NCBI GenBank assembly: GCA_002269645.1
Contig: NIVC01000032.1
Span: forward strand, 248,001-312,000
Source: Macrostomum lignano
Lineage: Eukaryota
Length of the DNA: 64,000 nt
Direction: 5' to 3'
Below, piece after piece: positions 13,133 to 45,527 of this stretch (the stretch's first letter is position 1; each line of letters opens with the position of its first letter). Made by a program: the position numbers and the translations under genes. Under the pieces are notes generated by a model. It was not told where the DNA came from, ran no database searches, and saw only the letters and a list, made by a program, of their open reading frames with translations.

Positions 13133-13827
13133 TAGCATTCGAAGTATTTTATCTAATTATGTAATCTTGACCCTCCATGCATACACCAATGCTCAAGTGA
13201 GTTTTGTTTATTTTACAACAGCAGCAACAAAAGAAAACCAAAACGTTGCATTCCTTTGTTGTGTCAATTTTCTAGTGTCAATCTATAATTCAGTGATGCG
13301 CTGGCTAGCGGTTCGTTTCAGTAACAAATATTCATTTAGCAAGGTCTTTGTAGATATTATCTTGTTTATCAGACCCCGATCTTGCAGGCAGATAAGCGCG
13401 AGGTGCATAGTTGTTAGTTTATGATTTCAGTTGTGTTTTTTGAAACAAAATTCGACTTCTTTAACTGTCTGTCAATCAATCAAATTAGGAAAATAATACG
13501 GCTTGTAACAGGCGCCGCTGACAAGCCAAGTGACGTATATACAATAAGTGCTAACTAATTTATGACAAAACTGAATTAGCTTTCTTCCCAAACTTGTTGA
13601 CATTCCATGTGTCCCACTCAAATTTTCACCTGCCTTTTTTGACCTCGGCCGAACCTGTACCCTATGTTTTGTTAATTAGGGTGACCTGAAAATACAGTGA
13701 AGTCTTGCTCTTTGCGAAATTTCCCTGCTTTAAGTTGAATTTTAACCATGAAATATTTGTTTGAAATTCGATGCAGCTTTTATGGGGATCACTGCATACT
13801 TGAATCGGGGGCATTGTTCATTAGGAT

Positions 13828-14878
13828 CATGGGATTCTCGAGTCGGGATAATAGGATTCTTGATTTGGGATCATAGGTTTCTCGATTTGGGATAATGGGA
13901 TTCTCGATTTGAGATAATGGGATTCTCGATTTGGGATCATGGGATTCTTGATTTAGGATCATGGGATCCTTGATTCGGGATAATTGGATTCTCGATTTGG
14001 AATAATGGGATTCTCGATTTTGGATAATGGGACTCTCGATTCGGGATAAGGGGATTTTCGATTCGGGATAATGGGATTCTTGATTTGGGATCATGGGATT
14101 CTTGATTTGGGATCATGGGATTCTCGATTTGGGATCGTGGGATTCTCGATTTTGGATAATGGGATTCTCGATTCGGGATAATGGGACTCTCGATTCGGGA
14201 TAAGGGGATTTTCGATTCGGGATAATGGGATTCTTGATTTGGGATCATGGGATTTTCGATTTGGGATCGTGGGATTTTCGATTCGGGATAATGGGATTCT
14301 CTATTTGGGATCATGGGATTTTCGATTTGGGATCATGGGATTTTCGATTTTGGATCATGGGATTTTCGATTTGGGATCATGGGATTTTCGATTTTGAATC
14401 ATTGTATTCTTGATTTGGGAATTTTATTTGGGATCATGGGATTCTTGATTTAGGATCATGGGATCCTTGATTCGGGATAATTGGATTCTCGATTTGGAAT
14501 AATGGGATTCTCGATTTTGGATAATGGGATTCTCGATTTTGGATAATGGGACTCTCGATTCGGGATAAGGGGATTTTCGATTCGGGATAATGGGATTCTT
14601 GATTTGGGATCATGGGATTCTCGATTTGGGATCGTGGGATTCTCGATTTTGGATAATGGGATTCTCGATTCGGGATAATGGGACTCTCGATTCGGGATAA
14701 TGGGATTCTCGATTCGGGATAATGGGACTCTCGATTCGGGATAAGGGGATTTTCGATTCGGGATAATGGGATTCTCTATTCGGGATCATGGGATTTTCGA
14801 TTTGGGATCGTGGGATTTTCGATTTTGAATCATTGGATTCTTGATTTGGGAATTTTTGGGATCATGGGATTCTCGATT
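13828..14878. repeat. ~22-bp minisatellite
   Basis: Unit GGGATTCTCGATTTGGGATCAT with variants. Confidence 0.95.
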
Positions 14879-29636: not shown

Positions 29637-29869
29637 TGACAGCGCTGAGACACTGTTCGGGACTTTGTTTACCTGTGTTTACCTAGCCACTCTTGTCCTT
29701 GTTTTTGAGCTGCAGGAATATAGCCATCCTATAGAGCCTCGCCATCCAGGAATGTGCTGGCAGATGCAAATTTGCTTGTCAGTTTGTCGTCCTCGGAGCC
29801 CTTTTTAAGTTCTTTTGGTACATGTATAATATACGATCGTTCAAGGACCAACTAGAAGTTACCGTTACC

Positions 29870-30487
29870 ATCTCCCATCCCAGACCCCAAACCTACAACT
29901 ACGAGCGTACATCTCCCATCCCAGACCCCAAACCTACAACTACGAGCGTACATCTCCCATCCCAGACCCCAAACCTACAACTACGAGCGTACATCTCCCA
30001 TCCCAGACCCCAAACCTACAACTACGAGCGTACATCTCCCATCCCAGACCCCAAACCTACAACTACGAGCGTACATCTCCCATCCCAGACCCCAAACCTA
30101 CAACTACGAGCGTACATCTCCCATCCCAGACCCCAAACCTACAACTACGAGCGTACATCTCCCATCCCAGACCCCAAACCTACAACTACGAGCGTACATC
30201 TCCCATCCCAGACCCCAAACCTACAACTACGAGCGTACATCTCCCATCCCAGACCCCAAACCTACAACTACGAGCGTACATCTCCCATCCCAGACCCCAA
30301 ACCTACAACTACGAGCGTACATCTCCCATCCCAGACCCCAAACCTACAACTACGAGCGTACATCTCCCATCCCAGACCCCAAACCTACAACTACGAGCGT
30401 ACATCTCCAATCCCAGACCCCAAACCTACAACTACGAGCGTACATCTCCCATCCCAGACCCCAAACCTACAACTACGAGCGTACATT
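29870..30487. repeat. 41-bp minisatellite (~15 near-identical copies)
   Basis: Unit CATCTCCCATCCCAGACCCCAAACCTACAACTACGAGCGTA. Confidence 0.98.
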
Positions 30488-30995
30488 TAGATCAAAAGTT
30501 CATTCGGAGTGACTGTATCAATTTCTACTTTCCAAAGCACTCATATTTTAACAATAATTTTCCAGCTAAAAGTACCTGTGCCCATGCATATAAAACACAA
30601 AACAATAAACCACTGAGGAAAATGCAACACAGAAGCGAGCGCTGATCTGCAGCGAGTGAGGAGAATTTAAACAAACTGCATGCCATTTTTGCTGAAATTC
30701 AATTTAACAGTCAATTGTCCCAATTTCGGGTGCTGAAACTTCTAGAAAAATAAAAACAATCAGAGAAGTGTTGAGGGCCAACGTGAATCTTAGCTACATG
30801 CATAATATTTAATGTGCTTCTATTCAATAAATATCAATTCTGAACAGACTGGACATAATGAACAAATATCAGACAAAGAAGGTCATCGCATGTAAAAATC
30901 CTATAATAACAAAAACTCGACCGAAACCCGGCCTCCATAAATCAGTCACTAAGAGAAACCCCACATTTAGATTATTATTCGGCCTGTGAATAAAA

Positions 30996-32732
30996 TTAGG
31001 ATGCACTGAACACCTGCAGTTTCCTGTTGCCATGGTCAGCCACCACCAGCTGCTCGCGCGGACCTCCAGTCACCACCGCCAGACCCAATGGCCTGTCGAA
31101 CCTGTCGTCTCCGCTGCCGCACTCACCCGGAGTCCCCAGAGTCCACAGCAGCGACCCGTCGTCTGCAGCCACCGCTCGCACTGACTCACCACCGAATTCA
31201 CTCACGAACAGGCGGCCTCTGCTGTCGACGGCCACATCAATTGGATGAGCAAACTGTTGGAGGCCGGAACGCTGAGTCGGGAAGGAGGCGACCAGCTGCT
31301 GGGTGTCGATGCGCACTCTGTGCACCTGCTTATGCTCCCTGTCGATCACCAGAATGCAGTTTTCGTGAGTCGCCAGGTTGCGCAAATAAGCATGAGGACG
31401 CTGAGACAGCGTGATGACCGTCTCCATCTGCCAAGTCGCTTTGCTGAATGAAGCAATTTTGTTTCCACTGGACACAAACACGGAGGCTGCGTTGCCGCCG
31501 ATTCCCCAGATGCCCTTAAAGCCCTCGATGTGTGGGCGGACTCGAATCACCACGCGACCGCTCAGGTCCGTCACTGTCACTGCGTCAGGCTGAGCAATGA
31601 ACAGCAGCTGACGGTCGCAGTGAAGGCCACGAATGTCCTTCTCCCAGTCGATGTCGCAGTGGCACCGCAGCTTCTGTGAGCCGTCCACAGAAAGCACCAG
31701 TAGGTATTCTCTGTGATAGAATGATGCAAGGATGCAGGGCTTCTGTGAGCCGTCCACACACAGCAGCAGTAGGTGATCTTTCTTGCTCGTGAAGCTAGAG
31801 AATGATGCAAAGATGCAGGGCTGAGGCAGAGGTTTTCTGCGGTCTCCCGCTGAATTGGCGGGAACCACACGGCCTGAGGTGTCACACACGAATCCGCTGG
31901 TGTCGCTGCACACAACCAGCCATGTAACATCGCCATCCAGCTTCACCTCGTGACTGAAGACCATCGGCTCTAACATTCTCTCTCTCTCAGCGGCTATATC
32001 TCTGTCTATCTCCTCGGATGTCGCGGTCACCGCAGCGTCTCTCGACCAGTCGCCCTCTTCACTGCGTCCCGCACAAATGCCGACCAGCCGCTCGAGCTGG
32101 CCCAGAAGCCGCAGCTGCAGCTCCTCATTGTCGCTCTGGTCTCTGAGCAGCCGCTCTGACCTCTCAAAGTCGGCCTCCAAGTCTCCAAGCGATTCGTGCA
32201 TGGACTGCACCAGGCGAAGCAGCTCCGCCATGTCGCCTGCAGCCTCCACAGTGGCCACCTCCTGCTTGTAGCTGGAGACGTCCTCGAGGTCCCGCTCGCA
32301 CACACGCACTGCCTCAAGCACACCTGAGAGCTGGCCCGTCACCCTGCTACGAAACGAGTCGATGTGTTGCTGTACCAAATCGAATTTGTGATTGACCTCT
32401 TGCAGCTGCTGTTGGATGTCGAGAGCGAGACGACGCAGCGACTCAGCGTCTTGTCTTGGTCGCATCAGCGCTGCACGGCTGGCTGCATTTGCTGCACCTT
32501 GTGAGTCTTGTGAGTCTTGTGACTCTTGTGAGTAGGCACGCAGCAGCTCTTCGACCTCCTCCTTGAGCTTGAATAGATTGGCCACATCGACACTGAGGTG
32601 TTGACTGCACATGTGGCAGCGGGAGAACGGAGCCACACCGACTGCAGCTTGGTCGCAGATGATGCAGAGAGGAGTTGGGGTAGCGGGAGGCGCGTCCGAA
32701 CTCGAGCTGTCGCTGGAGTCTTCAAGGCTCAT
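30996..32732 (-). CDS. B-box-like/coiled-coil/NHL-repeat protein (RING-less TRIM-NHL-like), paralog 1, 578 aa
   Basis: CxxC-x12-CxxC-xxH zinc motif, long coiled coil, C-terminal NHL blades (FAHPIDVAVDSRGRLFVSE; FDRPLGLAVV...VVADHGNRKLQVF); uninterrupted ORF. Confidence 0.85.
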   Translation of the reverse strand: MSLEDSSDSSSSDAPPATPTPLCIICDQAAVGVAPFSRCHMCSQHLSVDVANLFKLKEEVEELLRAYSQESQDSQDSQGAANAASRAALMRPRQDAESLRRLALDIQQQLQEVNHKFDLVQQHIDSFRSRVTGQLSGVLEAVRVCERDLEDVSSYKQEVATVEAAGDMAELLRLVQSMHESLGDLEADFERSERLLRDQSDNEELQLRLLGQLERLVGICAGRSEEGDWSRDAAVTATSEEIDRDIAAERERMLEPMVFSHEVKLDGDVTWLVVCSDTSGFVCDTSGRVVPANSAGDRRKPLPQPCIFASFSSFTSKKDHLLLLCVDGSQKPCILASFYHREYLLVLSVDGSQKLRCHCDIDWEKDIRGLHCDRQLLFIAQPDAVTVTDLSGRVVIRVRPHIEGFKGIWGIGGNAASVFVSSGNKIASFSKATWQMETVITLSQRPHAYLRNLATHENCILVIDREHKQVHRVRIDTQQLVASFPTQRSGLQQFAHPIDVAVDSRGRLFVSEFGGESVRAVAADDGSLLWTLGTPGECGSGDDRFDRPLGLAVVTGGPREQLVVADHGNRKLQVFSAS

Positions 32733-33477
32733 TGTTTGTCAGGAAATTTGCTATTTTTGAAAAAAAATATTGAAGTGCTTAGACAAAGTGAACTACATTC
32801 AAAGTTGCTTAAATCGGTTCCCTTTTCATAGGAAATGGCTGTGCATGCAGTTTTGTGTTCGATGACTGATGGATGTTTTATGATATGTACAAAAAAGTTT
32901 GTGTGGTAAAATTTATTTTTCGTTTTTATGCCAGATAAATGTTTTTGTTATAATTATATAAAAGTACAAAATTCAAATCAACTCAAATTGCTGATTAGGT
33001 GCTCACAGTGGGAACTGAGCAGCCTGCCAGGAATGGACAATGCAGCTCTTCTCTCCCCGTCTGTCTGTCTCTCCTGTGCAGGCATTGAACACCGCGGATT
33101 TCTATCCCCATTTTGAACAGCTGGGGTACTCAGCGGGCTGAGAGTCACCCTCTTCAGTAATTTCCATTCATAGTGCTGTACAAGCTGTGTATACTGCCTC
33201 TGCTATTGACTGCACTACTATCGGTTTTTTCTGACCGTCCTAAGTCTGAAGTAATACAACTTTAATCATTTCTGCCCCCAGGCAGAGCTGTGGCTGGCTT
33301 ACGAGTAAGCAGCATGAAAACTGACGTCAATATTGAAACCGAAAATCAAGGGAAATCTTGCAGCAAGAAGAGCTAAAAGCAATTTATTAACAAACTTTTT
33401 TGCGAAGTTCTAAATGCTCGAATTTTAAGTTGGCTGGCTGAATTGGTGGCTTAAAATAGTTTGAAGGACTCTGGGAA

Positions 33478-33901
33478 TGGGGAAGGGCTGGGGATAGGGG
33501 AGGCTGGGATAGGGAAGGCTGGGGTGGGGAAGGCTGGGATGGGGAAGGCTGGGATGGGGAAGGCTGGGGTGGAGAAGGCTGGGGATGGGGAAGGCTGGGG
33601 TGGGGAAGGCTGGGATGGGGAAGGCTGGGGTGGAGAAGGCTGGGATGGGGAAGGCTGGGGATGGGGAAGGCTGGGGTGGGGAAGGCTGGGATGGGGAAGG
33701 CTGGGGTGGGGAATGCTGGGATGGGGAAGCCTTGGGTGTGGAAGGCTGGGATGGGGAATGCTGGGGTGGTGAAGGCTGGGGTGGGGAAGGCTGGGGATGG
33801 GAAGGCTGGGGTGGGGAAGGCTGGGATGGGGGAGGCTGGGGTGGGGAAAGCTGGGATGGGGAAGGCTGGGATGGGGGGAGGCTGGGATGGGGAAGCTGGG
33901 C
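33478..33901. repeat. 15-bp G-rich minisatellite just 3' of the EF-hand gene stop
   Basis: Unit GGGGAAGGCTGGGRT. Confidence 0.95.
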
Positions 33902-33924
33902 GCCAATCCCAGCCGCGCTCTCCA

Positions 33925-34941
33925 TCACTTTGAGCTCGGCCTCTTCCCTGACGGCCTTTCTGGCTGCTCATCCCGCAGCCCACTGCTCATCTCCGCGAAC
34001 TCGTCAAAGGAGATGAAGCCGTCCTGATTGGTGTCCGCGGTGCTGAACATCTCGACGATGTCGGAGTCGCTGAGCTCCGCGCTGCCGACGCTGGGCCTCA
34101 TGGCCTGGCGCAGCTCCGTCATGGAGATCTTGCCGTCCCTGTTCCTGTCGATGGCGCGGAACAGGTCGCTGATGTCGGAGTCCATCAGGCGGAGACTCAG
34201 CTCGGTGCCGTGCCGCTGCATCATGTCGCAGAATCCGCTGAAGTCCAGGTGACCGGGCGGCGCCTTCGAGTTGGCGTCCCGCTGAGCTTCGATCATGGCG
34301 TCCAGCTCGGACTGAGATGCCGCGATGTTGAGCTGCTGCATCAGCTGGCCGAGATCGCTGGCATCGATGAGGCCGTCTTTGTTGTGGTCAGCCAGCTTGA
34401 ATGCCGCCTGCAGCTGGTCTTTGTTGAGCGCGGAGTTTTTGTTCTCCTGCTGCTGGTCATTGCTGACGTTGGAGTCTTTGTTCTCCCGCTGCTGGTCATT
34501 GTTGACGCCGGAGTCTTTGTTCTCCTGCTGCTGGTCATTGCTGACGTTGGAGTCTTTGTTCTCCCGCTGCTGGTCATTGTTGACGCCGGAGTCTTTGTTC
34601 TCCTGCTGCTGGTCATTGTTGACGTTGGAGTCTTTGTTCTCCCGCTGCTGGTCATTGTTGACGTTGGAGTTTTTGTTCTCCCGCTGCTGGTCATTTCTGA
34701 CGTCGGAGTCTTTGTTCTCCTGCTGCTGGTCATTTCTGACGTCGGAGTCTTTGTTCTCCTGCTGCTGGTCATTGTTGACGTCGGAGTCTTTGTTCTCCTG
34801 GTGCTGGTCATTGCTGATGTTGTAGTCTTTGTTCTCCTGCTGCTGGTCTTTTTTCTCCGGGGCGTCACTGTCCGCCCGTCTTTGTCCGGGTGCAGCCGAT
34901 GACTTGCTGCTGGCAGCCGCTGTCGACCTCCTGTGAGCCAT
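33925..34941 (-). CDS. Calmodulin-like four-EF-hand protein with an N-terminal 13-aa repeat
   Basis: ATG at 34941 (MAHRRST); ~11 copies of NDQQQENKDSDVN (39 bp); loops DHNKDGLIDASD, degenerate DANSKAPPGHLDFSG, DRNRDGKISMTE, DTNQDGFISFDE; stop TGA 33925-33927. Confidence 0.88.
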   Translation of the reverse strand: MAHRRSTAAASSKSSAAPGQRRADSDAPEKKDQQQENKDYNISNDQHQENKDSDVNNDQQQENKDSDVRNDQQQENKDSDVRNDQQRENKNSNVNNDQQRENKDSNVNNDQQQENKDSGVNNDQQRENKDSNVSNDQQQENKDSGVNNDQQRENKDSNVSNDQQQENKNSALNKDQLQAAFKLADHNKDGLIDASDLGQLMQQLNIAASQSELDAMIEAQRDANSKAPPGHLDFSGFCDMMQRHGTELSLRLMDSDISDLFRAIDRNRDGKISMTELRQAMRPSVGSAELSDSDIVEMFSTADTNQDGFISFDEFAEMSSGLRDEQPERPSGKRPSSK

Positions 34942-35257
34942 CGGCGCACGAAATCGGCAGGTTAAAAGTTCCAAAGAGCTTCAACTTCACGTTGCTTTTT
35001 TAATTCACACAGCATTCCTGGTTACCGAGATTTGTCTATGGCTGCAGCTTCAGACTAAGCCGAGCTCAATTGTTTCTCTATATGTAAAACCGTCGATATT
35101 CTCAAAGACTCGTGTGCCATGTTGACTCAGACTCAGACTCAATGGTGCTCATTGAAAAATCAGAAAATTAAACGTTGAAGCTTGATTAAACAGCAAATCA
35201 TCCTGCGATGTCATTGAAACAGCCATATAGGTTGCTACTCAAGGCCTTGGGTGCCGA

Positions 35258-35705
35258 TCTCAGATCCCCATCCAAGATCCCCATACCAGATCCCCATCCC
35301 AGATCCCCATCCCAGACCCCCATCCCAGATCCCCATCCCAGACCCCCATCCCAGATCCCCATACCAGATTCCCATCCCAGATCCCCATACCAGATTCCCA
35401 TCCCAGATCCCCATCACAGATCCCATACCAGATCCCCATACCAGATCCCCATCCCAGATCCCCATACCAGATCCCCATCACAGATCCCCATACCAGATCC
35501 CCATACCAGATCCCCATACCAGATCCCCATCCCAGATCCCCATACCAGATCCCCATCACAGATCCCCATACCAGATTCACATCCCAGATCCCCATCACAG
35601 ATCCCCATACCAGATCCCCATACCAGATCCCCATCCCAGATCCCCATACCAGATCCCCATACCAGATTCCCATCTCAGATCCCCATCTCAGATCCCCATC
35701 TCAGA
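35258..35705. repeat. 13-bp minisatellite
   Basis: Unit CAGATCCCCATAC/CAGATCCCCATCC. Confidence 0.95.
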
Positions 35706-35740
35706 TATTACACAAAATGAAAGAAACATGGCAGAAAGTG

Positions 35741-38700
35741 CACACTATCAAGACTCACTATAGTCACTGTGAACACTATTCAGACTCACTGTAGTCACTG
35801 TGAACAACAAACAACAACAAGGTACTGCTCCCGCCGGCCACGCAGTAGCCAGAAAGGGGGGAGCAGTCAGAAAGCGCGTCTCTGGGCCATTGCCCTCAGG
35901 AAGTCGCATCCCCCTGCTTGGTCCGGGGCGCCAGCGTCACTCAAAAGTCGGTCAGGGTATTGCACCGTTCGCCCTTGGCCTCGCCTCCGCGGTCCCTGCA
36001 GCTTGAGCAGCAGCACGTCGTGTAGCGGCTCAGGACAGCGGGCCTCCGACCGGATGACGTGGCCAGCCAGTCGAAGTCGCCGCCCGCGCAGCAGGTCAGA
36101 AGGCCGCGTCAGGCGCGCCCTAGTGTAGAGCGCGGCATTGGTCTCGTTGCCTGGGCCGCTGCGCACTCCGAAAGCCGCACGCAGCATTGCCGCATGCGCA
36201 GCGTCCAGCTGCCTCTCCAAGGCGTCCGTCAGGGTCCAAGTCTCGGCGTTGTACAACAGGACAGTCTCGACGACTGCCTGAAACAGCCGAGCCTTGAGCC
36301 CGTCGTCCAGGGCCTCAGATTGGAGCACGGAGCGCACAGATCGAAATGCGGCCCAGGCCAGTCCTCGTCGTCTCACCAGGTCGTCGGCAACGTCCGGCAC
36401 GGAACCGCCGAGGTACACAAAGCGCTCGCAGCGGGTAAGCATAAATGCATTCCCGGCAGCGTCTCGGTAATTGATCTCGGCCGGCAAGTCGGAGGGCACC
36501 GTGAACACTACCGTCTTCCGCGCGTTCAGCTTAAGGCCGACCCGCGACGCTGCCGCCGTCAGGCCATCAAGCAGCCGCTGGGCACCTTCAGCCGTCGATG
36601 AAAGTAGCGCGAGGTCGTCCGCGGAGCCGAGAACGGAGAGCCGCTTCTCAAAAGGAAGCCGTCATCCAGGTTGGGCAGGCCGGTTCTCAGCACCCAGTCC
36701 AGTGCCAGCACAAACAGAAAAGGCGCCAAAGTGTCACCCTGCAGCACGCCTGACGACGTGCTGAATTGGTCTGACAGTCCATCTGGCGTCATCACCGAAG
36801 CGGTCGTGTCCTGGTACATCGCCATGATGGCGGAAATCAGTTGCTCCGGTACATTGTACGCACGAAGCACGAGAGGCAGCGCGCCGCGAGCCAGCGAGTC
36901 GAAGGCCTTGAGGAAATCAATGAAGATCACCACGAGACTTGACTGATGGATGCGCGCCTCCTTGATGATGCGGCGGAGGGCTAGGATCTGCGTCACTGTG
37001 CCGCGATGTGGGCGGAACCCGTTCTGCTCAGTTCGCAGGAACTGGTCCAGCACAGGCTGTAACCGAGCCAGCAGCACCCGGTTGAACAGCTTCGCGGCGC
37101 AGGACATAAGCGAGATCCCCCTGTGCTCCTCCTTCCGTGTCGTGCCTGGCTTCTTCGGGATCGCGACGATGTGCGCGGTTGTCCACTCGCGGGGCGCGGC
37201 ATCTCCAGAAAGGACACCGTTCATCACACGAGCCACCTCAATGGCGACCCTTGTGACTCGCAGCACCTCGATCGGCACCTCGTCCGGTCCCGGGGCGCGA
37301 CCTCCCGGCGCCTGGCGAGCGAACTGCACAACGTCGTTGCTGGTCACTGGCTGGGTGTTGAAATCTTCCTGCGACGGCAGCGCGTCTCGAGCGGCAGTGG
37401 CATCACTTCTGGCAGAGGCGGTGGCGGCGCGTTGACGATATCGGCGAAGAAGTCGCGTAGCTCATTTCTGCGCGCTTCTGGCGTGTCGCCGGTCAAGTTT
37501 AGCACCGTTCTCTTCTTGCGACCAGTCAAGGCGTTGATTGTCGGCCATACGAGCCGATTCTGTTGGTCGAGCCCTGCGGAGGTGACGCTTCGGATGGCAT
37601 CGTCAACAGCGGCTTGCTGCCGCCTGATATAAACGTCTGACAGGGCTTTCTCGGCCTCTGCCGTCGGTCTCCTGGACCGTCGCAGCCTCTCGACTGTCCG
37701 CCTCGCCTCTTGAACCTCCTTGTCATCCGCCCAGACAGGGAGACTACGGGCTACAGATTTCATCAGTGGCAGAGTTTTGCTCGCTGCCGTCGCTACTGCC
37801 GCGCTTATTTCAGAGTAGTTACCGGTGCTCGCAGACTCTCCCAGTGCGGTGGCGAACGCGTACGCGAACCTGCCGCGGATGCTAGAATCTCGCAGAGCCC
37901 GGAAATAGCGGCGTGGGGGTCGCTTGGGCGGCCTGTACAGCGGATCCCGGATGCGAAGGTTGCAGAAAAGCAGGCGGTGGTCGGATCGGATGGACAGCGG
38001 GGCCATCGTGTTGCAGTCTGTCACCCGACTGCCCTAGCGGTTACGAACAAGAATGTGGTCGAGCTGGGCCCGGCGCGTCGTGGCGTTTCAGCGCGCGTTC
38101 CGCTTTCTTCGCTTACAACCAGCAAAAGTCGCCAAACGAAAAGCTGGCTTGCGGAAGCGCGTGTTCGCCGACACCAGATCTTGCCGCGACATAAGGTCCG
38201 CAAGCGCACTAGAGTTGCCATTTTGGCGCGGGGACACGAACGGGGAGCGCTGGGACCTCTCCGCGACAGCGTTGAGATCGCCAAGCACCGCCAGTGTCAC
38301 GCATTGCGACCGACTCGAGCTGCTCTGACAGGAAATCAAAGAACTCCTGCGCCTCATGCTGATGGGCAGCTGTCGGTGCATACGCGCAGAACAGCCGGGC
38401 GTTACGGCCTCGCAGTCTCACATCCACACGCAAAAGCCGAGGTGACACGGGGACACAGCAGACACTCTGCTGCAGCCGCGGTCCGACTAGAGCGCCGACT
38501 CCTCCACGTCCTCGACTGTCCGCTGAGGTGAAAAACAGGGTCCAGCCGGCACCGAGATCCTCACGTTGGAGGCCGTCCTGCGTCACAATTGAAACTTCCT
38601 GCAGCATCACAATGTCCAGCTGCAGATCGAATGCTAGCTGCGCCAGCATTCCCCTCCTCCAAGCAGGTTTGAGAGTGCGACAGTTGAAGTTGGCAATTCT

Positions 38701-39556
38701 AAACGCGCTTCCTGGTACAGCTGGGGCCCGGACTTGTTGGGCCTCACGGTCTCCTGCGCCACCAGGCAGAACCGATTGGATAGGGGCCGGGTCAAGCAAA
38801 CTTGCGGACTTGCGAAAACGACCTTTCAGCCGTCCTCGCCTGTTGCGCTCACGCCGCCGCTGGATGCGCCGTGGAGACTTCGTTTGCCTCGCCGGTTGCC
38901 CTTCCTGCCGCTGTTAGCAGCCGCAGCGTCCGTGTTAGCAGAGCGCAGCTCACCGCTCTCACCTGGGCAAGCGCCAGCCAGATGGCAAGCGTCACCCGGA
39001 GGTCGCAGCATATTTGCACCGAAGTGCAAATTTAATAGAACCTAATTTAATAGAAATAGTCACTGTGAACACTATTCAGACTCACTGTAGTCACTGTGCA
39101 CACTATCAATACCCACTATAGTCACTGTGAACACTATCCAGACTCACTGTAGTCACTGTGCACACTATCAATACTCACTATAGTCACTGTGAACACTATC
39201 CAGACTCACTGTAGTCACTGTGCACACTATCAAGACTCACTATAGTCACTGTGATCACTATCAAGACTCACTATAGTCACTGTGAACACTATCCAGACTC
39301 ACCATAGTCACTGTGAACACTATCAAGAATCACTATAGTCACTGTGAACACTATCAAGACTCACTATAGTCACTGTGAACACTATCAAGAATCACTATAG
39401 TCACTGTGAACACTATCAATACTCACTATAGTCACTGTGAACACTATCAAGAATCACTATAGTCACTGTGAACACTATCAAGAATCACTATATAGTCACT
39501 GTGAACACTATCAAGAATCACTATATAGTCACTGTGAACACTATCAATACTCACTA
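35741..39556. repeat. 31-bp minisatellite split by the RTE insertion (35741-35802 and 39056-39556)
   Basis: Unit CACTATAGTCACTGTGAACACTATCAAGACT on both sides of the LINE. Confidence 0.93.
35803..39055 (-). mobile_element. RTE-clade non-LTR retrotransposon (APE + RT), near full length but frameshifted
   Basis: APE motifs (IANFNCRTL, IVMLQE, YAPT, GDLNA, SDH) and RT motifs (RGISL, QNGFRP, IDFLKAFDS, GVLQGDTLAP, SADD replacing YADD, YLGG) spread over several frames; (TTG)n tail at 35803-35820; 43-bp flanking duplication. Confidence 0.93.
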
Positions 39557-39629
39557 GCCACTTTGGACATTACATAACGAACAAACAATCTATGGTCCAA
39601 CAATTTGACTGATTAGTGGTAGGTGTTGA

Positions 39630-41366
39630 CCTTGTACTTCCAGCCAATGGCTTCTTGCCGAAGCAATCTGCCGGGACCGTGGACGTCTGCCACCATCGGG
39701 GACGCCCCGGCGAGACCCGTGGAGCCAACTCTGAACGGTGCCTCCAAGAAGACACCTGCAACTCCAGCTGCCAAGCAGCTGAGCACCACCTCTGGAGCTG
39801 CCCGTCGTCGACTTAACAAGGCGAGGCGGGTCAAGGGGGGCGGAAGCCGGCCGTCAGGGGCCAACGGCCCGCGGCAGCGGAAGCTTCCCAATCTGGGGCG
39901 GCGGCGGAAGAGGGCCTTGAGCCCACTGAAGTCCCTGCCCAGGATAGGGAGGCCGATGCAGCCGGGAGGGTGGACAGCCCACCTGATGCGGCAAAGAGGC
40001 AACCGGCGGTTATCATCCTGGGAAAGGACGCGCGCCTATCTCCCGAACAGCTGAAGCAGGTGAGCCGCACTGTTGATGGTCTCTTGTGGAAGCTCACTCT
40101 GAACGGCACACCTCTGAGCATTCACTCGAATGCGACGAGAGACCCTTGCCTTCTCATTTGGCCCGGTGATGCTGACTCGGGACGGCGGCTCCTTGAGCTG
40201 CTGCCCGAGCAGAGCTGGGACCTCAATTTAGCCTTCAGCAGAGAGGATAAGCGCCCCTGGACCAAGAGGCATCGAATCTGGGTTCCGGCCAGTAGAGTCG
40301 TTACCTCTGCTGATGAGCTCCGTAAAGGACTGCTAGCAGTCAACCGAGAGCTTCCCGCCGCGGGCCTAGTGGTGCATGACACCCGTAAGCGTACCGACGG
40401 CACTGGCTTCACAGCCATCCCGGGGCTGTCGGACGCCTGAATGAGGCGCTATCCGCACGACAGCTTCATCAACGTCGGCCTTTGGAAGCTGCGCATCCGC
40501 TCCTACGAGGCCGACCCTCCACGTGGCGGTGAGCAGGACAGGCGGGACGCGAAGGCGGCCGAAGCCGAGGCGGGAGCCTTCAAGAAAGTGCGGGCCTTTA
40601 AGAAGCGGTCGCTTATCCCGCACTCCGACCTCTGCCTCAAGACTCTCGAGGAGTGTGGCGGGCTCAACATCCTCACAGACTCAATCCTCGGCAACGAGCG
40701 CACTGACCTGCTGGCCAAGGCTGGCTCTGCCGGCGCGCTGTTGGGGCCAGGCCCAGGGCCCCCATCCCCGCCTCGGTGATCAATTCCCGCGTCAAGCGCT
40801 GGGCTGATTCCGAGCATCTCCACGGAGGGCAGGCGATCCCGAGCTGCCGTCCCCTGTCCCTCCCCCTCCTGAGTAGAGCCCTCCTCAGGCTCAAGCGCAG
40901 AGACCTCAGGCGCAGAGACCTCAGAGCAGTTAGCATGGCCCTCTCCGGGCATGGCTGCTTGTCTCGCCACCGCTTCCTTCAGGGCCAAGTACCTGAGGAG
41001 CGGTGCCCCTTCTGCGGCTCAGGTAGTGAAAACGCCGAGCACTTCATCTGCCACTGCCCGGTTTTCACCAGGGCCAGGCTCACTCACCTCGGGCCAAACC
41101 CGGTTCTCTCCGACGTTTGCAGGCCTGAGAGCATCCCGCTGCTTGCCCGGTACTTTAGGGACACGGAACGAGCTGATTACTTCCCCACCGCCGGTGAGGA
41201 GGACCGCGCTGCAGGCGAGACCGACGGGTCCCCCTGACGGCCCTGAGCAACATCGCTTCGATGGAAGTCATTGGTCGACGACAGGGGCTAGCGAATTGAG
41301 TGGTCCCCTCCGCCTCCTCGCTGCATCCGCCGGACGATGCCCCTGCCGCTAAGTCAAATAAGTCCA
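39630..41366 (+). mobile_element. Internally deleted LOA/I-group LINE (ORF1 + RNase H remnant + C-terminal CCHC), 12-bp TSD
   Basis: TSD GGTAGGTGTTGA at 39618-39629 and 41367-41378; ORF1-like RIWVPASRVV...LLAVNRELP (DUF4780-like, from recall); RNase H pieces LNILTDS and ILGNERTDLLAK; ALSGHGCL...CPFCGSGSENAEHFICHCP; no APE or RT. Confidence 0.78.
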
Positions 41367-41378
41367 GGTAGGTGTTGA

Positions 41379-42230
41379 GCCTGACTTTTTATCTCGACAT
41401 CGCGCTTTTAACGACAAAGGAGACTAGGACTCTGACGAACTTCAGGTGAGCACCGAGCTGCTGTGAGCTGGCCGAAGCATATCTGCAGGACCCAGGGATC
41501 AGCCAGCGATCGAGTTGACTCAAAAGCTCGCCGAATTCAGTCAAGCAGCTGAGGCCGGAGCTGCAGCCATGCTGGAGAATCAGGAAGCAGCTCGATTCCC
41601 AGATCCCGTGGGATTCGGTCTGGTGGCCCAGGATCCACAATCAAAATTGAGGAGTTCATGCGCCACTGCGAGGCCTCCAAGGGACGGTTCTGACACCGAC
41701 GAAATGGCCAACGCGACCATGCGAGGAGCTTCAGCTGGATATCCTCGGGGAGCTGCACTGGGCACCGAACTCCTGCCGCTTTATTCCCGGTGCAAGTGGC
41801 CGGAAGCAGCCTACGTGTTGACAGTGACGACATGGTTCAGCCGCTGGGGACTTTCAAGGAGCATCAATACAGATGAAAGGCCTGAGCCCGTGTCGGGCGA
41901 ATCCGAGGCATCCAGCATCGCCAGTTGCCGCACTCTCAACCCCAGAGCAATGCGGCAGTTGAGCACTTCAGCAGGATCTTTAAGGACGGCCTGAAGAAGC
42001 GCCTGTAGGAGGGCTGCGGCATGCCTCTTACCGAGGTGTCTCCGGCAGAGTTGATGTCAGGTCGAAAAATCTGCTCTGCTGCCAAGGCCCCATCGCATCA
42101 AGCGGAAGCGGCAGCAGGTTTTCAACCGGAGTCAACATAACTAGGAGGCAGCCGATATTGGAGGTGGGACTGAGGCGGCCACTTGTCCGCGGCAAACTGA
42201 GCAGCCGCCTGTTCGAACCCCCGGACAGAT
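41379..42230 (+). pseudogene. Degenerate Ty3/Gypsy integrase remnant
   Basis: Across frames: DFLSR, WWPRIHNQIEEFMRHCEA (zinc-binding), LQLDILG, INTD, PQSNAAVEHFSRIFKDGLK, SPAELMSGRKI; many stops and frameshifts. Confidence 0.75.
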
Positions 42231-42234
42231 GTGA

Positions 42235-42440
42235 CTCTGACTACTACACTGTGACTGATGACGAATGAACTGTGACTGATGACTAATGAACTGTGACTAA
42301 TGACTAATGAACTGTGACTAATGACTAATGAACTGTGACTAATGACTAATGAACTGTGACTAATGACTAATGAACTGTGACTAATGACTAATGAACTGTT
42401 ACTCATTGACTAATGAACTGTGACTAATGACTAATGAAAA
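42235..42440. repeat. 21-bp minisatellite
   Basis: Unit ACTGTGACTAATGACTAATGA. Confidence 0.95.
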
Positions 42441-42865
42441 GTCACTGCGAAACCGGTCCCGCATCACCAAAAAACCAGTGAGAGTTTACCTCAGAAAATA
42501 TTTTTTTCAGATAACTTAAAATGATTTATAAAATAAAGAAAGTTTATTACCTGATTGGATGAGCAATTACATGAAAATTGATCAGGTTTTCTGTGTGAGA
42601 GTACACTCAATTGTGCATCAATTTCTACTTTCCAAAGCACTTATATTTAACAATAATTTCAAGTCCTAATGAAGTACAACAAATGCTTCTATTCAATAAA
42701 TATCAATTCTGAACATACAGGACATAATAAACAATTATCAGACAAAGAGGGTCATAACATGTCGATTATTCTATAAGAAGAAAAGCTCTAACTAAAACTC
42801 GGCATCCAATAAATCAATAACTCCAGAAACCCCACAGTTCTGTTATTATTCGGCCTGTGAATAAA

Positions 42866-44773
42866 TTAGGATGCACTGAACACCTGCAGTCTCATATTGC
42901 CGCCGTCAGCCACCACCAGCTGCTCGCGCAGACCTCCTGTCACCACCGCCAGACACCATGGACTACTGAATCTGCCATCTCCGCTGCCGCTCTCGCCCGG
43001 AGTCCCCAGAGTCCACAGCAGCGACCCGTCGTCTGCAGTCACCGCTCGCACTGAGTGACCCAAAAATTCACTCACGAACAGGCGGCCTCTGCTGTCGACG
43101 GCCATCTCCAATGGACCAGCAAACTGTCGAGTCGGGAAGGAGGCGACCAGCTGCTGGGTGTCGATCCGCACTCTGTGCACCTGATTGTGCTTAAAGTCCG
43201 TCACCAGAATGCAGTTTTCGTGAGTCGTCAGGTTCCGCAAATAAGCATCAGGAAGCTGAGACAGCGTGATGACCGTCTCCATCTGCCAAGTGGTTTTGCT
43301 GAATGCAGCAATTTTGTTTCCACTGGACACAAACACGGAGGTTGCGTTGCCGCCGATTCCACTGATGTCACCGAAGCCCTCGATGTGTGGGCGGACTCGA
43401 ATCACCACGCGACCGCTCAGGTCCGTCACTGTCACTGCATCAGGCTGAGCAACGAACAGCAGCTGACGGTCGCAATGAAGGCCACGGATGTCCTTCTTCC
43501 AGTCGATGTCGCAGTAGCACCCCAGCTTCTTTGAGCCATCTACAGACAGCACCAGTAAGAAGTTCTTTTTCAAAAAGAATGATACAAAGATGCAGGGCTG
43601 AGGCAGAGCCTCGCTGCCGCCTCTCGCTGAGTCGGCGGGAACCACACGGCCTGAGCGGTCACCAACGAATCCGCTGGTGTCGCTGCACACAGCCAGCCAT
43701 GTAACAGGGCCATCCAGCTTCACCTCGTGACTGAAGACCATCGGATCGAACAGCAGTCTCTCTCTCTCAGCAGCGGCTATGTCCTCCGATGTTGCGGTCA
43801 CCGCAGCGTCACCCACATCCGGTCTCACGGTCACCGCAGCGTCACCCACATCCGGTCTCACGGTCACCGCAGCGTCTCTCACATCCGGTTTCACGGTCAC
43901 CGCAGCGTCACCCACATCCGGTCTCACGGTCACCGCAGCGTCACCCACATCCGGTCTCACGGTCACCGCAGCGTCTCTCACATCCGGTTTCGCGGTCACT
44001 GTAACGTCTCGCGACCAGTCACCCTCTTCACTGCGTCCCGCACAAATGCCGACCAGCCGCTCGAGCTGGCTCAGAAGCCGCAGCTGCAGCTCCTCATTGT
44101 CGCTCTGGTCTCTGAGCAGGCGCTCTGACCTCTCAAAGTCGGCCTCCAAGTCTCCAAGCGATTCGTGCATGGACTGCACCAGGCGAAGCAGCTCCGCCAT
44201 GTCGCCTGCAGCCTCCGCCGTGGCCACCTCCTGCTTGTAGCTGGAGACGTCCTCGAGGTCCCGCTCGCACACACGCACTGCCTCAAGCACACCTGAGAGC
44301 TGGCCCGTCACCCTGCTACGAAACGAGTCGATGTGTTGCTGTACCAAATCGAATTTGTGATTGACCTCTTGCAGCTGCTGTTGGATGTCGAGAGCGAGAC
44401 GACGCAGCGACTCAGCGTCTTGTCTTGGTCGCAGCAGCGCTGCACGGCTGGCTGAGACTGCTGCGCCTTGAGACTGTTGTGGCTGTTGTGACTCTTGTGA
44501 CTCTTGTGATTCTTGTGATTCTTGTGAGTCTTGTGAGTCTCGTGACTCTTGTGACTCTTGTGACTCTTGTGAGTAGGCACGCAGCAGCTCTTCGACCTCC
44601 TCCTTGAGCTTGAATAGATTGGCCACATCGACACTGAGGTGTTGACTGCACATGTGGCAGCGGGAGAACGGAGCCACACCGACTGCAGCTTGGTCGCAGA
44701 TGATGCAGAGAGGAGTTGGGGAAGCGGGAGGCGCGTCCGAACTCGAGCTGTCGCTGGATTGTCCAAGGCTCAT
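42866..44773 (-). CDS. B-box-like/coiled-coil/NHL-repeat protein, paralog 2, 635 aa
   Basis: Collinear with 30996-32732; expanded 9-bp (SQE) and 33-bp (PDVGDAAVTVR) coding repeats; probable 5' UTR intron 44795-44983 (GTGAGT...TTTCAG on minus). Confidence 0.85.
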   Translation of the reverse strand: MSLGQSSDSSSSDAPPASPTPLCIICDQAAVGVAPFSRCHMCSQHLSVDVANLFKLKEEVEELLRAYSQESQESQESRDSQDSQESQESQESQESQQPQQSQGAAVSASRAALLRPRQDAESLRRLALDIQQQLQEVNHKFDLVQQHIDSFRSRVTGQLSGVLEAVRVCERDLEDVSSYKQEVATAEAAGDMAELLRLVQSMHESLGDLEADFERSERLLRDQSDNEELQLRLLSQLERLVGICAGRSEEGDWSRDVTVTAKPDVRDAAVTVRPDVGDAAVTVRPDVGDAAVTVKPDVRDAAVTVRPDVGDAAVTVRPDVGDAAVTATSEDIAAAERERLLFDPMVFSHEVKLDGPVTWLAVCSDTSGFVGDRSGRVVPADSARGGSEALPQPCIFVSFFLKKNFLLVLSVDGSKKLGCYCDIDWKKDIRGLHCDRQLLFVAQPDAVTVTDLSGRVVIRVRPHIEGFGDISGIGGNATSVFVSSGNKIAAFSKTTWQMETVITLSQLPDAYLRNLTTHENCILVTDFKHNQVHRVRIDTQQLVASFPTRQFAGPLEMAVDSRGRLFVSEFLGHSVRAVTADDGSLLWTLGTPGESGSGDGRFSSPWCLAVVTGGLREQLVVADGGNMRLQVFSAS

Positions 44774-45527
44774 TGTTGGATAGTCTGTGATGAGCTGAAA
44801 TGCAGATGAAGTTAAAAACTAACGTAGTGACAGATAGAGAAGAGAGTGTGAAGAGAGTGAGAAGAGAGGAGAGAGAAGAAGAGAGGGAGAACAGAGGGAG
44901 CAGAAGGCAGAAGTTCTCAATGCACAGTGGGATTAGCAAAGCAGATTTCAAGGCATTCCCAGCCTTATTCCAATCCGACTCACCTGTCAAATGGGAAATA
45001 CAGTCAGATTTCGAGTCAGGGAGTTCAGTGCTGGTCAAGGAATTCTTGGCTGAGTCTCCTCTGCTGCCAGTGCAAGGCTGCTGAGCTCTGCAAAAGCCAG
45101 TGTGCCACACACTTTGAATCGGTGCCAGTATCGCAGGTCACAGAATTGCATCTCTGCAGCTGCAAGAATGCTCAGTCTGAGAAATTACTGAGCACACACT
45201 GGTACCTGTTCTGGGTGAGTTTTCTAGTGCAGATAATTATTAATTTAACTTTGTTTGTCTGTGCAGCGGTGCGAAATTCGAATTTCTCGCTATTCGATGT
45301 TGGAAATGTGCATCGGAGACCGAGTTGGTCTGGCTGGCAATCCCTGCTGCACTCAGCTGAGCTCTGCAGTCTCTGCGCCTCTCATTCCGTTTCTGTGTGT
45401 GCAGCCTGCGGTCTGGTGTACTTTGCCAGCAGCTGCGCGATGAAGCTCGCGTGTGCAGAGCGGCCTGCAGTAACAATGGAGACTGCTGGCTGAGAAATGA
45501 GTGGGGAGAGAAAAGCCGCAATGAGGG

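Follow-up and report, generated by a model that had tools for sequence, protein, structure and literature searches.

Why should two neighbouring genes be almost identical in one half and clearly different in the other? This question was raised by a tandem pair of genes, A and B, in a stretch of 64,000 nucleotides from Macrostomum lignano (assembly GCA_002269645.1, contig NIVC01000032.1, positions 248,001 to 312,000), which is called the window here and whose numbering is used unless another locus is named. Gene A encodes a Cys motif, then a long helical region and then a propeller of the NHL type. An earlier note on this DNA had proposed that the propellers of A and B diverged under diversifying selection, possibly with gene conversion keeping the remainder uniform. 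In our study, sequence comparison identified A and B as two members of a lineage-restricted, tandemly amplified birth-and-death family of Macrostomum. Diversifying selection on specific loop residues of the propeller was strongly supported, and homogenisation by gene conversion was supported over the whole coding sequence. The two genes and the parts compared are as follows.

30996-32732, minus strand: gene A, an intronless open reading frame (ORF) of 578 amino acids (ORF list, Pfam NHL, full-length AlphaFold2 (AF2) model).
42866-44773, minus strand: gene B, an intronless ORF of 635 amino acids, a paralog of A with the same architecture (ORF list, Pfam, alignment, AF2 model).
30999-31958, minus strand: propeller of A, residues 259-578, with 25 hypervariable codons.
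42869-43741, minus strand: propeller of B, residues 345-635 (AF2 model, alignment).
30815-30995, minus strand: 3' flank of A; its homologue beyond the stop codon of B is 42684-42865, at a p-distance of 0.153 (DNA comparison).

Both ORFs were found in the ORF list with the ends given in the earlier note. They are oriented head-to-tail with a 10.1-kb spacer between them, and no third family copy was found in the window by tblastn. The DNA homology of the pair spans 30815-32736 and 42684-44777. The 5' (N-terminal) 750 nucleotides contained 28 mismatches (95.9-97.1% identity), whereas the 3' (C-terminal) 1179 nucleotides, including about 180 nucleotides of the 3' flank, contained 123 (84.8-86.6% identity), and the mismatch load of the two parts differed significantly (Fisher p=3e-8). 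The near-identical N-terminal half and the divergent propeller half described earlier were therefore both recovered. The six peptide pairs quoted at that time (FKGIWGI/FGDISGI, IDREHKQ/TDFKHNQ, FAHPIDV/FAGPLEM, EFGGES/EFLGHS, FDRPLGL/FSSPWCL, and DHGNRK/DGGNMR) were all found at aligned positions and between conserved strands, so that the strand cores are conserved as claimed.

By the method of Nei and Gojobori (NG86), the synonymous divergence (dS), nonsynonymous divergence (dN), and their ratio (omega) between A and B were 0.044, 0.023, and 0.52, respectively, in the N-terminal half, and 0.156, 0.113, and 0.73, respectively, in the C-terminal half, where dS was 3.5-fold that of the N-terminal half. 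At 4-fold degenerate sites with the same amino acid, 5 of 111 differed in the N-terminal half and 7 of 134 in the C-terminal half. So few differences in either half indicate that the C-terminal NG86 dS was inflated by hot codons with multiple hits. Taken at their face, the NG86 values of the pair, with dN/dS below 1 and a raised dS, resemble the outcome that the earlier note had named as a refutation, but the A-B pair by itself lacks the power to show selection.

Seven loci of the same assembly (L001 to L007) were taken for comparison. All relatives found in the protein search were M. lignano proteins. At least 20 family copies were present in tandem arrays and several of them were frameshifted, in agreement with the earlier suggestion of an expanding family. 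L001 contained about eight copies in 54 kb, all in a single orientation, of which four were intact and the rest were frameshifted or fragments. At least four further contigs carried other copies, three of which were more remote members of a subfamily (44-50% identity). In the upstream flank, B was 95% identical to L002 and A matched the frameshifted copies of L001 at 85%; the flanks were 93-97% identical to the reference loci. Retroposition was considered as the origin of the copies, since the genes are intronless and the A-B homology stops 4 bp upstream of the ATG; it was rejected because the homology of other pairs extends over 650-1300 bp on the upstream side and as far as 1.5 kb on the downstream side. 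Literature searches found no publication on this family. Several public gene models of the UniProt/WormBase type (P0008, P0009, P0011, and P0013) fuse family members to unrelated upstream genes, for example those of a voltage-gated proton channel or a ferritin-like protein, and are probably read-through mis-annotations in gene-dense arrays.

The alignment of 11 distinct intact paralogs showed an almost invariant N-terminal half, and invariant propeller strands interrupted by positions with 5-8 different residues. The pairwise medians of dS and dN were 0.044 and 0.034 in the N-terminal half and 0.132 and 0.121 in the C-terminal half, respectively. Site models were fitted to 289 gap-free propeller codons of these paralogs with our own maximum-likelihood (ML) implementation of the GY94 codon model with F3x4 frequencies and full optimisation of branch lengths. 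Omega over all codons was 1.02 under M0. The nearly-neutral model M1a (lnL -4013.0) was rejected in favour of M2a (lnL -3863.4) with a likelihood-ratio test statistic (LRT) of 299 (p about 1e-65), and M2a placed 10.5% of the propeller sites at an omega of 9.9, with 25 sites having a posterior above 0.9. Hypervariable codons of the two genes are located as follows.

31506-31508 (W409), 31386-31394, 31335-31346, 31239-31247, 31191-31196, 31092-31097, and 31023-31034, minus strand: examples of the hypervariable codons of A (site model).
43361-43363 (S471), 43241-43249, 43190-43201, 43109-43117, 43061-43066, 42962-42967, and 42893-42904, minus strand: positions included among the hypervariable codons of B (site model).

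In three simulations under M1a with the tree unchanged, the LRT was about 0 and no site was selected. When the propeller was divided into three sub-segments, each with its own neighbour-joining tree, the LRT was 53, 79, and 146, respectively. The 23 sites picked from the nine reference paralogs alone (LRT 267) predicted where A and B differ, at 15 of 23 picked sites compared with 39 of 266 other sites (p=3e-7). In split-sample tests, in which one half of the sequences served to pick the sites and the other to test them, omega at the held-out sites was 2.8 (p=0.01) and 12.3 (p=3e-8) with a class-specific synonymous rate. The diversifying selection proposed earlier for A and B was thus found once nine further paralogs were included, and was not found in the C-terminal half of the pair alone. 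In the N-terminal half, the site model gave an LRT of 39 that came from three sites (alignment columns 4, 5, and 106). In A, the first two are residues 4 and 5 (window about 32718-32723), which follow Met-Ser-x, and the third is at about residue 82 (window about 32487-32489), just after the SQE repeat.

A high rate of change could also arise if the loop codons were mutational hot spots, owing to their local sequence context or to error-prone repair that follows conversion, with no selection for change. Many codon pairs at these sites differ at 2-3 positions and a slight synonymous rise was present at hot codons, both of which would be expected from such hot spots. However, the selected codons carried 105 extra amino acids and 11 extra synonymous codons, compared with 170 and 93 elsewhere. 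Changes at codon positions 1, 2, and 3 numbered 48, 43, and 30 at hot sites and 91, 70, and 125 elsewhere, so that an excess of changes at positions 1 and 2 over position 3 is confined to hot sites. When the selected sites were fitted with their own rate scale, omega was still 5.5, with a dS over the tree of 1.27 compared with 0.60 elsewhere. A purely mutational origin of the variable positions is therefore scarcely credible.

The position of the selected sites on the fold was examined next to the known binding surface of such propellers. In an NHL propeller, the top surface is made up of the b-c and d-a loops, and in Brat this surface binds RNA (PMC4015489); the top groove is the putative interaction site in TRIM2, TRIM3, and TRIM71 (PMC9634614). 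Blades 3-7, the five C-terminal ones with a regular structure, contained 19 selected sites, of which 16 fell in d-a or b-c loops as assigned from the strand order; two of the other three were strand residues adjoining top loops and one lay where a d strand begins. The bottom loops of these blades comprise 35 residues, and none of them was selected (Fisher p=3e-4). The earlier expectation that the variable residues lie on the loops defining the top face was thus borne out under this assignment. A tree-free dN/dS in the same blades was 1.27 in top loops (95% confidence interval (CI) 0.87-1.88), 0.30 in bottom loops, and 0.64 in strands. Tyr was 16-fold, Trp 4-fold, and Arg 2.7-fold more frequent than expected at the selected sites, whose net charge ranged from 0 to +6 per paralog. 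This composition is typical of binding hot spots and, judged from the residues, would be compatible with an RNA or a protein ligand alike.

The contrast between top and bottom loops also bears on relaxed constraint, under which the propeller halves of redundant copies would drift towards pseudogenes, the variable sites being unconstrained loops and the conserved sites reflecting what remains of fold constraint. The domain-wide omega of about 1, the A-B omega of 0.73, an omega of about 0.6 at non-hot propeller sites, and the frameshifts in several array members are as this explanation predicts. It is nevertheless very unlikely, since M1a was rejected, the held-out omega of 2.8-12 was significantly above 1, bottom loops that are equally exposed had an omega of 0.30, and at least 11 copies keep intact ORFs of 540-635 codons.

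Homogenisation among the paralogs was found to extend over the whole coding sequence. The nucleotide diversity (pi) at 4-fold sites was 0.039 (95% CI 0.021-0.057) in the N-terminal half, 0.031 (95% CI 0.012-0.055) in the helical part, and 0.067 (95% CI 0.049-0.086) in the propeller. The mean difference in the first 180 nucleotides of the 3' flank was 0.28 over the family, and 0.153 for A and B, so that coding silent divergence was 4-7 times below that of the flank; for A and B, the difference between 4-fold sites and flank was significant (p=5e-4). In the four-gamete test, 46% of the pairs of biallelic informative sites failed. Failure was rarer between neighbouring than between distant sites (p=4e-4), and had already reached 37% within 30 nucleotides. 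A longest-run test similar to GENECONV gave weak signals (best global p=0.03). The low silent divergence relative to the flank together with the four-gamete failures indicates that gene conversion homogenises the whole coding sequence, and its simplest reading is frequent conversion of short tracts, about twice as effective in the N-terminal half, from which the hot codons escape. The gene conversion suggested in the earlier note was therefore supported, but its confinement to the dimerisation module was not.

The same data allow another explanation, in which the hot codons are islands of divergence, that is, old fixed differences between paralogs shielded from conversion while the rest was recently homogenised, and the contrast reflects age and not ongoing selection. 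The evident recombination among paralogs, the silent divergence far below that of the flank, and the raised synonymous change at hot codons (the proportion of synonymous differences by NG86 was 0.37 compared with 0.10 elsewhere, and ML dS was about 2-fold up) all speak for it. On the other hand, omega on held-out sequences was 2.8-12 even with a class-specific synonymous rate, and 5-8 residues per hot site among 11 copies point to repeated replacement instead of a few old states. Old divergence is unlikely to explain the contrast as a whole, and we retain it as a partial alternative to diversifying selection.

The assignment of the C-terminal domain to the NHL type was verified by three approaches. 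Pfam NHL (PF01436) matched A (E=1.4e-5) and B (E=2e-7) above the gathering score, at the last one or two blades only, and NHL repeats were the only Pfam matches in both proteins. A family profile matched the NHL domain of Thin/TRIM32 (E=3e-30), TRIM71 (E=4e-28), and TRIM2/3 (about 1e-20) in the PDB. The AF2 model of B residues 330-635 was a confident beta-propeller, with a predicted local distance difference test score (pLDDT) of 92.5 and a predicted template-modelling score (pTM) of 0.89, and its top Foldseek matches were the NHL domains of Thin, Lin41/TRIM71, and TRIM2/3 (template-modelling (TM) score 0.73-0.80), all of which are six-bladed. DSSP assigned 26 strands to the B propeller, including seven 'a' strands about 40 residues apart, and its alignment with the six-bladed structure 6xg7 took 329 columns for a target of 288 residues, which leaves at least 41 query residues unaligned by gap arithmetic. 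The modelled propeller is therefore likely to consist of seven blade-like units instead of six.

The N-terminal half and the regions that differ in length contained the following features.

32598-32669, minus strand: Cys motif C-x2-C-x13-C-H-x-C-x2-H of A, residues 22-45, named 'B-box' in the earlier note; equivalent in B at 44639-44710 (sequence).
32070-32606, minus strand: four long helices of A, residues 43-221, a presumed coiled-coil dimerisation module; equivalent in B at about 44039-44647 (DSSP of the AF2 model, alignment).
31719-31796, minus strand: A-specific in-frame tandem duplication of 26 codons (78 bp), which copies strands a and b of the second blade (alignment).
43795-43999, minus strand: B-specific coding tandem repeat, 33 bp x 6.2, DAAVTV[RK]PDV[RG], in the linker between helices and propeller (Tandem Repeats Finder (TRF), alignment).
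44467-44572, minus strand: coding microsatellite of B, 9 bp x 11.8, SQE/SQD (TRF).

The name B-box was not verified. No zf-B_box match was found by Pfam even at E<=10, and a phmmer search of the PDB gave no meaningful relative and no B-box match. The candidate zinc ligands of A in the motif are only C22, C25, C39, H40, C42, and H45, whereas Pfam zf-B_box has seven to eight. In the full-length AF2 model the motif had no fold (pLDDT about 31), and a B-box was named solely in the automatic UniProt name of the paralogs ('B box-type domain-containing'). Two otherwise intact paralogs (L001 30444-32093 and 42611-44269) contain LSH in place of RCH and so lack C39, which argues against a strictly required zinc site.

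No RING was matched by Pfam in A, B, or any of 15 relatives; this negative is limited by the 5' ends, where an upstream exon is formally possible. The ORFs of A and B begin 21 residues before the sole Cys motif, and in most copies a 'tttcag' precedes the ATG by about 22 nucleotides, with no in-frame stop codon between the two (window 32733-32760 and 44774-44800, and the units of L001-L005), which suggests from its sequence a splice or trans-splice acceptor. The 5' flank of gene A is of a different type, common only to the frameshifted copies of L001, so the expression of A may differ from that of the other copies.

The four helices of A were placed by AF2 at residues 43-76, 84-154, 162-198, and 203-221 with a pLDDT of 40-47 as a monomer, and the helical module was almost invariant among the 11 paralogs. 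When the N-terminal 256 residues were used to scan 1.84 billion representative proteins with HMMER, six proteins matched; four of them had also been returned by the protein search and are from M. lignano, and the other two were P0016 and P0017. No relative of the N-terminal module was thus detected outside Macrostomum among these representatives, with P0016 and P0017 not looked up. The proteins are RING-less and TRIM-like in layout, and membership of the TRIM family is not established.

Length changes between A and B were found in the linker, the SQE/SQD array, and the propeller. In the alignment with A, the 33-bp repeats of B form an insertion of 66 codons at 43811-44008. The (SQE)n array is longer in B by 18 codons (44480-44533), the shorter array of A being at 32498-32533, and the length of the SQE/SQD array differs among all paralogs. 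The duplicated 26 residues of A were modelled by AF2 as an extruded disordered loop (pLDDT 36-49), and the propeller stays intact. The a-b loop duplicated in A was also of variable length in other paralogs.

We consider it probable that the family is a cytosolic, TRIM-like, RING-less recognition family with a uniform helical module, whose top face diversifies for different ligands. The family turns over by birth-and-death with frequent short-tract gene conversion, which seems to keep the whole coding sequence alike, the helical module most. Diversifying selection at the same time drives fast amino-acid turnover at about 25 positions, mostly in the d-a and b-c loops. Each paralog would then act in the cytosol as a recognition module, and its propeller face would bind a ligand that differs from those of the other paralogs and changes fast, candidates for which are an RNA or protein of a virus, a transposon, or another antagonist. 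A uniform helical module would permit homo- or heterodimers between any paralogs. The innate-immune or RNA-surveillance role suggested in the earlier note would be a candidate function.

Several observations weigh against this interpretation. The top and bottom faces were assigned from the DSSP strand order of the B model alone and not from three-dimensional coordinates, and in the two atypical N-terminal blades four selected sites fell in nominal bottom loops. The dN/dS of the top-loop class defined a priori (1.27) was not significantly above 1, a low value because invariant structural residues of the loops dilute the class. The helices were modelled with low confidence as a monomer, and exact-sequence look-ups gave no public annotation record of the A and B proteins. 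Recombination among the paralogs violates the single-tree assumption of the site models, which was mitigated and not removed. The synonymous rate at hot codons was about 2-fold up in the pooled fit and more in one of the two held-out tests, but not in a third estimate, so that retained old divergence or local hypermutation may contribute at these codons.

A further-reaching proposal, which we regard as rather doubtful, is that flatworms possess variable receptors encoded in the germline, of a class not recognised before. Such receptors would lack a RING, dimerise by a coiled coil, and carry NHL propellers with hypervariable top-face loops rich in Tyr, Trp, and Arg that resemble complementarity-determining regions. 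Their repertoire would be diversified by selection, shuffled by conversion between tandem paralogs, and possibly multiplied by heterodimerisation through the uniform coiled coil, and viral or transposon RNA or protein would be recognised.

The region between and around the two genes contained the following features.

32733-42865, no strand: spacer that separates A from B, in which the two units share no homology; it includes several satellites (ORFs, Pfam, TRF).
33925-34974, minus strand: calmodulin-like EF-hand gene (Pfam EF-hand_7, E=2e-24).
35867-38799, minus strand: degraded non-LTR (long terminal repeat) retrotransposon resembling a long interspersed nuclear element (LINE), split over at least four frames (Pfam RVT_1 at 36559-37347).
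About 39970-41237, plus strand: second retroelement, represented by its tail; it contains an RNase H-like segment and, C-terminally, a motif rich in Cys (ORFs).

The N-terminal half of the EF-hand gene is a 39-bp x 11 coding repeat (NDQQQENKDS...), and this gene was not duplicated along with the NHL genes. The GC content of the retroelement block was 0.55-0.63 compared with 0.37-0.45 in much of the window. A 31-bp satellite flanks the LINE-like block on both sides (35738-35806 and 39056-39556) and also occurs between family copies in L001 28800-29500 at about 90-93% identity; it appears from this distribution that a satellite associated with the array was the insertion site of the retroelement. 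A 41-bp x 15 tandem repeat, 99% perfect, was found at 29869-30486, about 500 bp downstream of the stop codon of A, and yields a spurious ORF of 222 amino acids. The stretch 13809-14855 (about 1 kb) was about 76% identical to an internally repetitive part of L007 (15355-16958) with many overlapping matches, which points to a dispersed repeat family at the sequence level. The other long ORFs of the window gave only low-complexity artefacts in Pfam, the reverse transcriptase excepted.

The locus illustrates clearly how gene conversion and diversifying selection can act side by side in a single gene. If the ligands are viral or transposon RNAs or proteins, the family would provide a new receptor scaffold for invertebrate innate immunity, and the paralogs would, on the receptor reading, be a natural library of NHL top-face variants for studies of specificity. 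RNA interference and transgenesis are available in M. lignano, which is an experimentally tractable flatworm.

Among known systems, the TRIM-NHL proteins (TRIM71/LIN-41, TRIM32/Thin, TRIM2/3, Brat, and Mei-P26) are conserved developmental regulators, and NHL propellers are familiar from a handful of such regulators, in which they serve as conserved domains for binding RNA or protein. The C-terminal propeller of the Macrostomum family has its best sequence and fold match in this group, a long helical region likewise precedes the propeller, and a Cys/His motif is found where TRIMs carry B-boxes. The variable residues also lie in the b-c and d-a loops, which in Brat and LIN-41 make up the top face that binds RNA (PMC4015489, PMC9634614). 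Flies have three TRIM-NHL genes, C. elegans has four, and mammals have five (PMC4015489). Against these few genes, the Macrostomum family has 20 or more tandem copies and an omega of about 10 at the face. It also differs in having no RING and no recognisable B-box, an N-terminal module with no relative detected outside Macrostomum among the representatives scanned, and a propeller probably of seven blade-like units instead of six.

TRIM5alpha, TRIM22, and the fish finTRIM genes, which carry a B30.2/SPRY domain, are tandemly amplified, share a conserved coiled-coil dimerisation module, and evolve by birth-and-death with pseudogenes, and positive selection in them is concentrated in surface loops of the C-terminal recognition domain. 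The Macrostomum family is like them in its tandem expansion with pseudogenes and in a class of sites with omega above 1 that is clustered on the top loops. It differs in that its recognition domain is an NHL propeller and not SPRY, and intrinsic E3 activity is not expected because there is no RING; a link to viruses would be hypothetical for the Macrostomum family. In plant NLR/LRR arrays and MHC-type loci, homogenising exchange between tandem paralogs is likewise combined with hypervariable, solvent-exposed contact residues in a conserved repeat scaffold. Their fold and domain architecture are unrelated to the Macrostomum family, and the likeness is one of evolutionary mode only. The NHL scaffold is used here as SPRY is in TRIM5 and finTRIM or LRR in plant NLRs, with many copies, a near-fixed and presumed oligomerisation module, and a hypervariable face. 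The family is a TRIM5/finTRIM-like diversifying array, built on a normally conserved NHL scaffold that was not previously known for such use.

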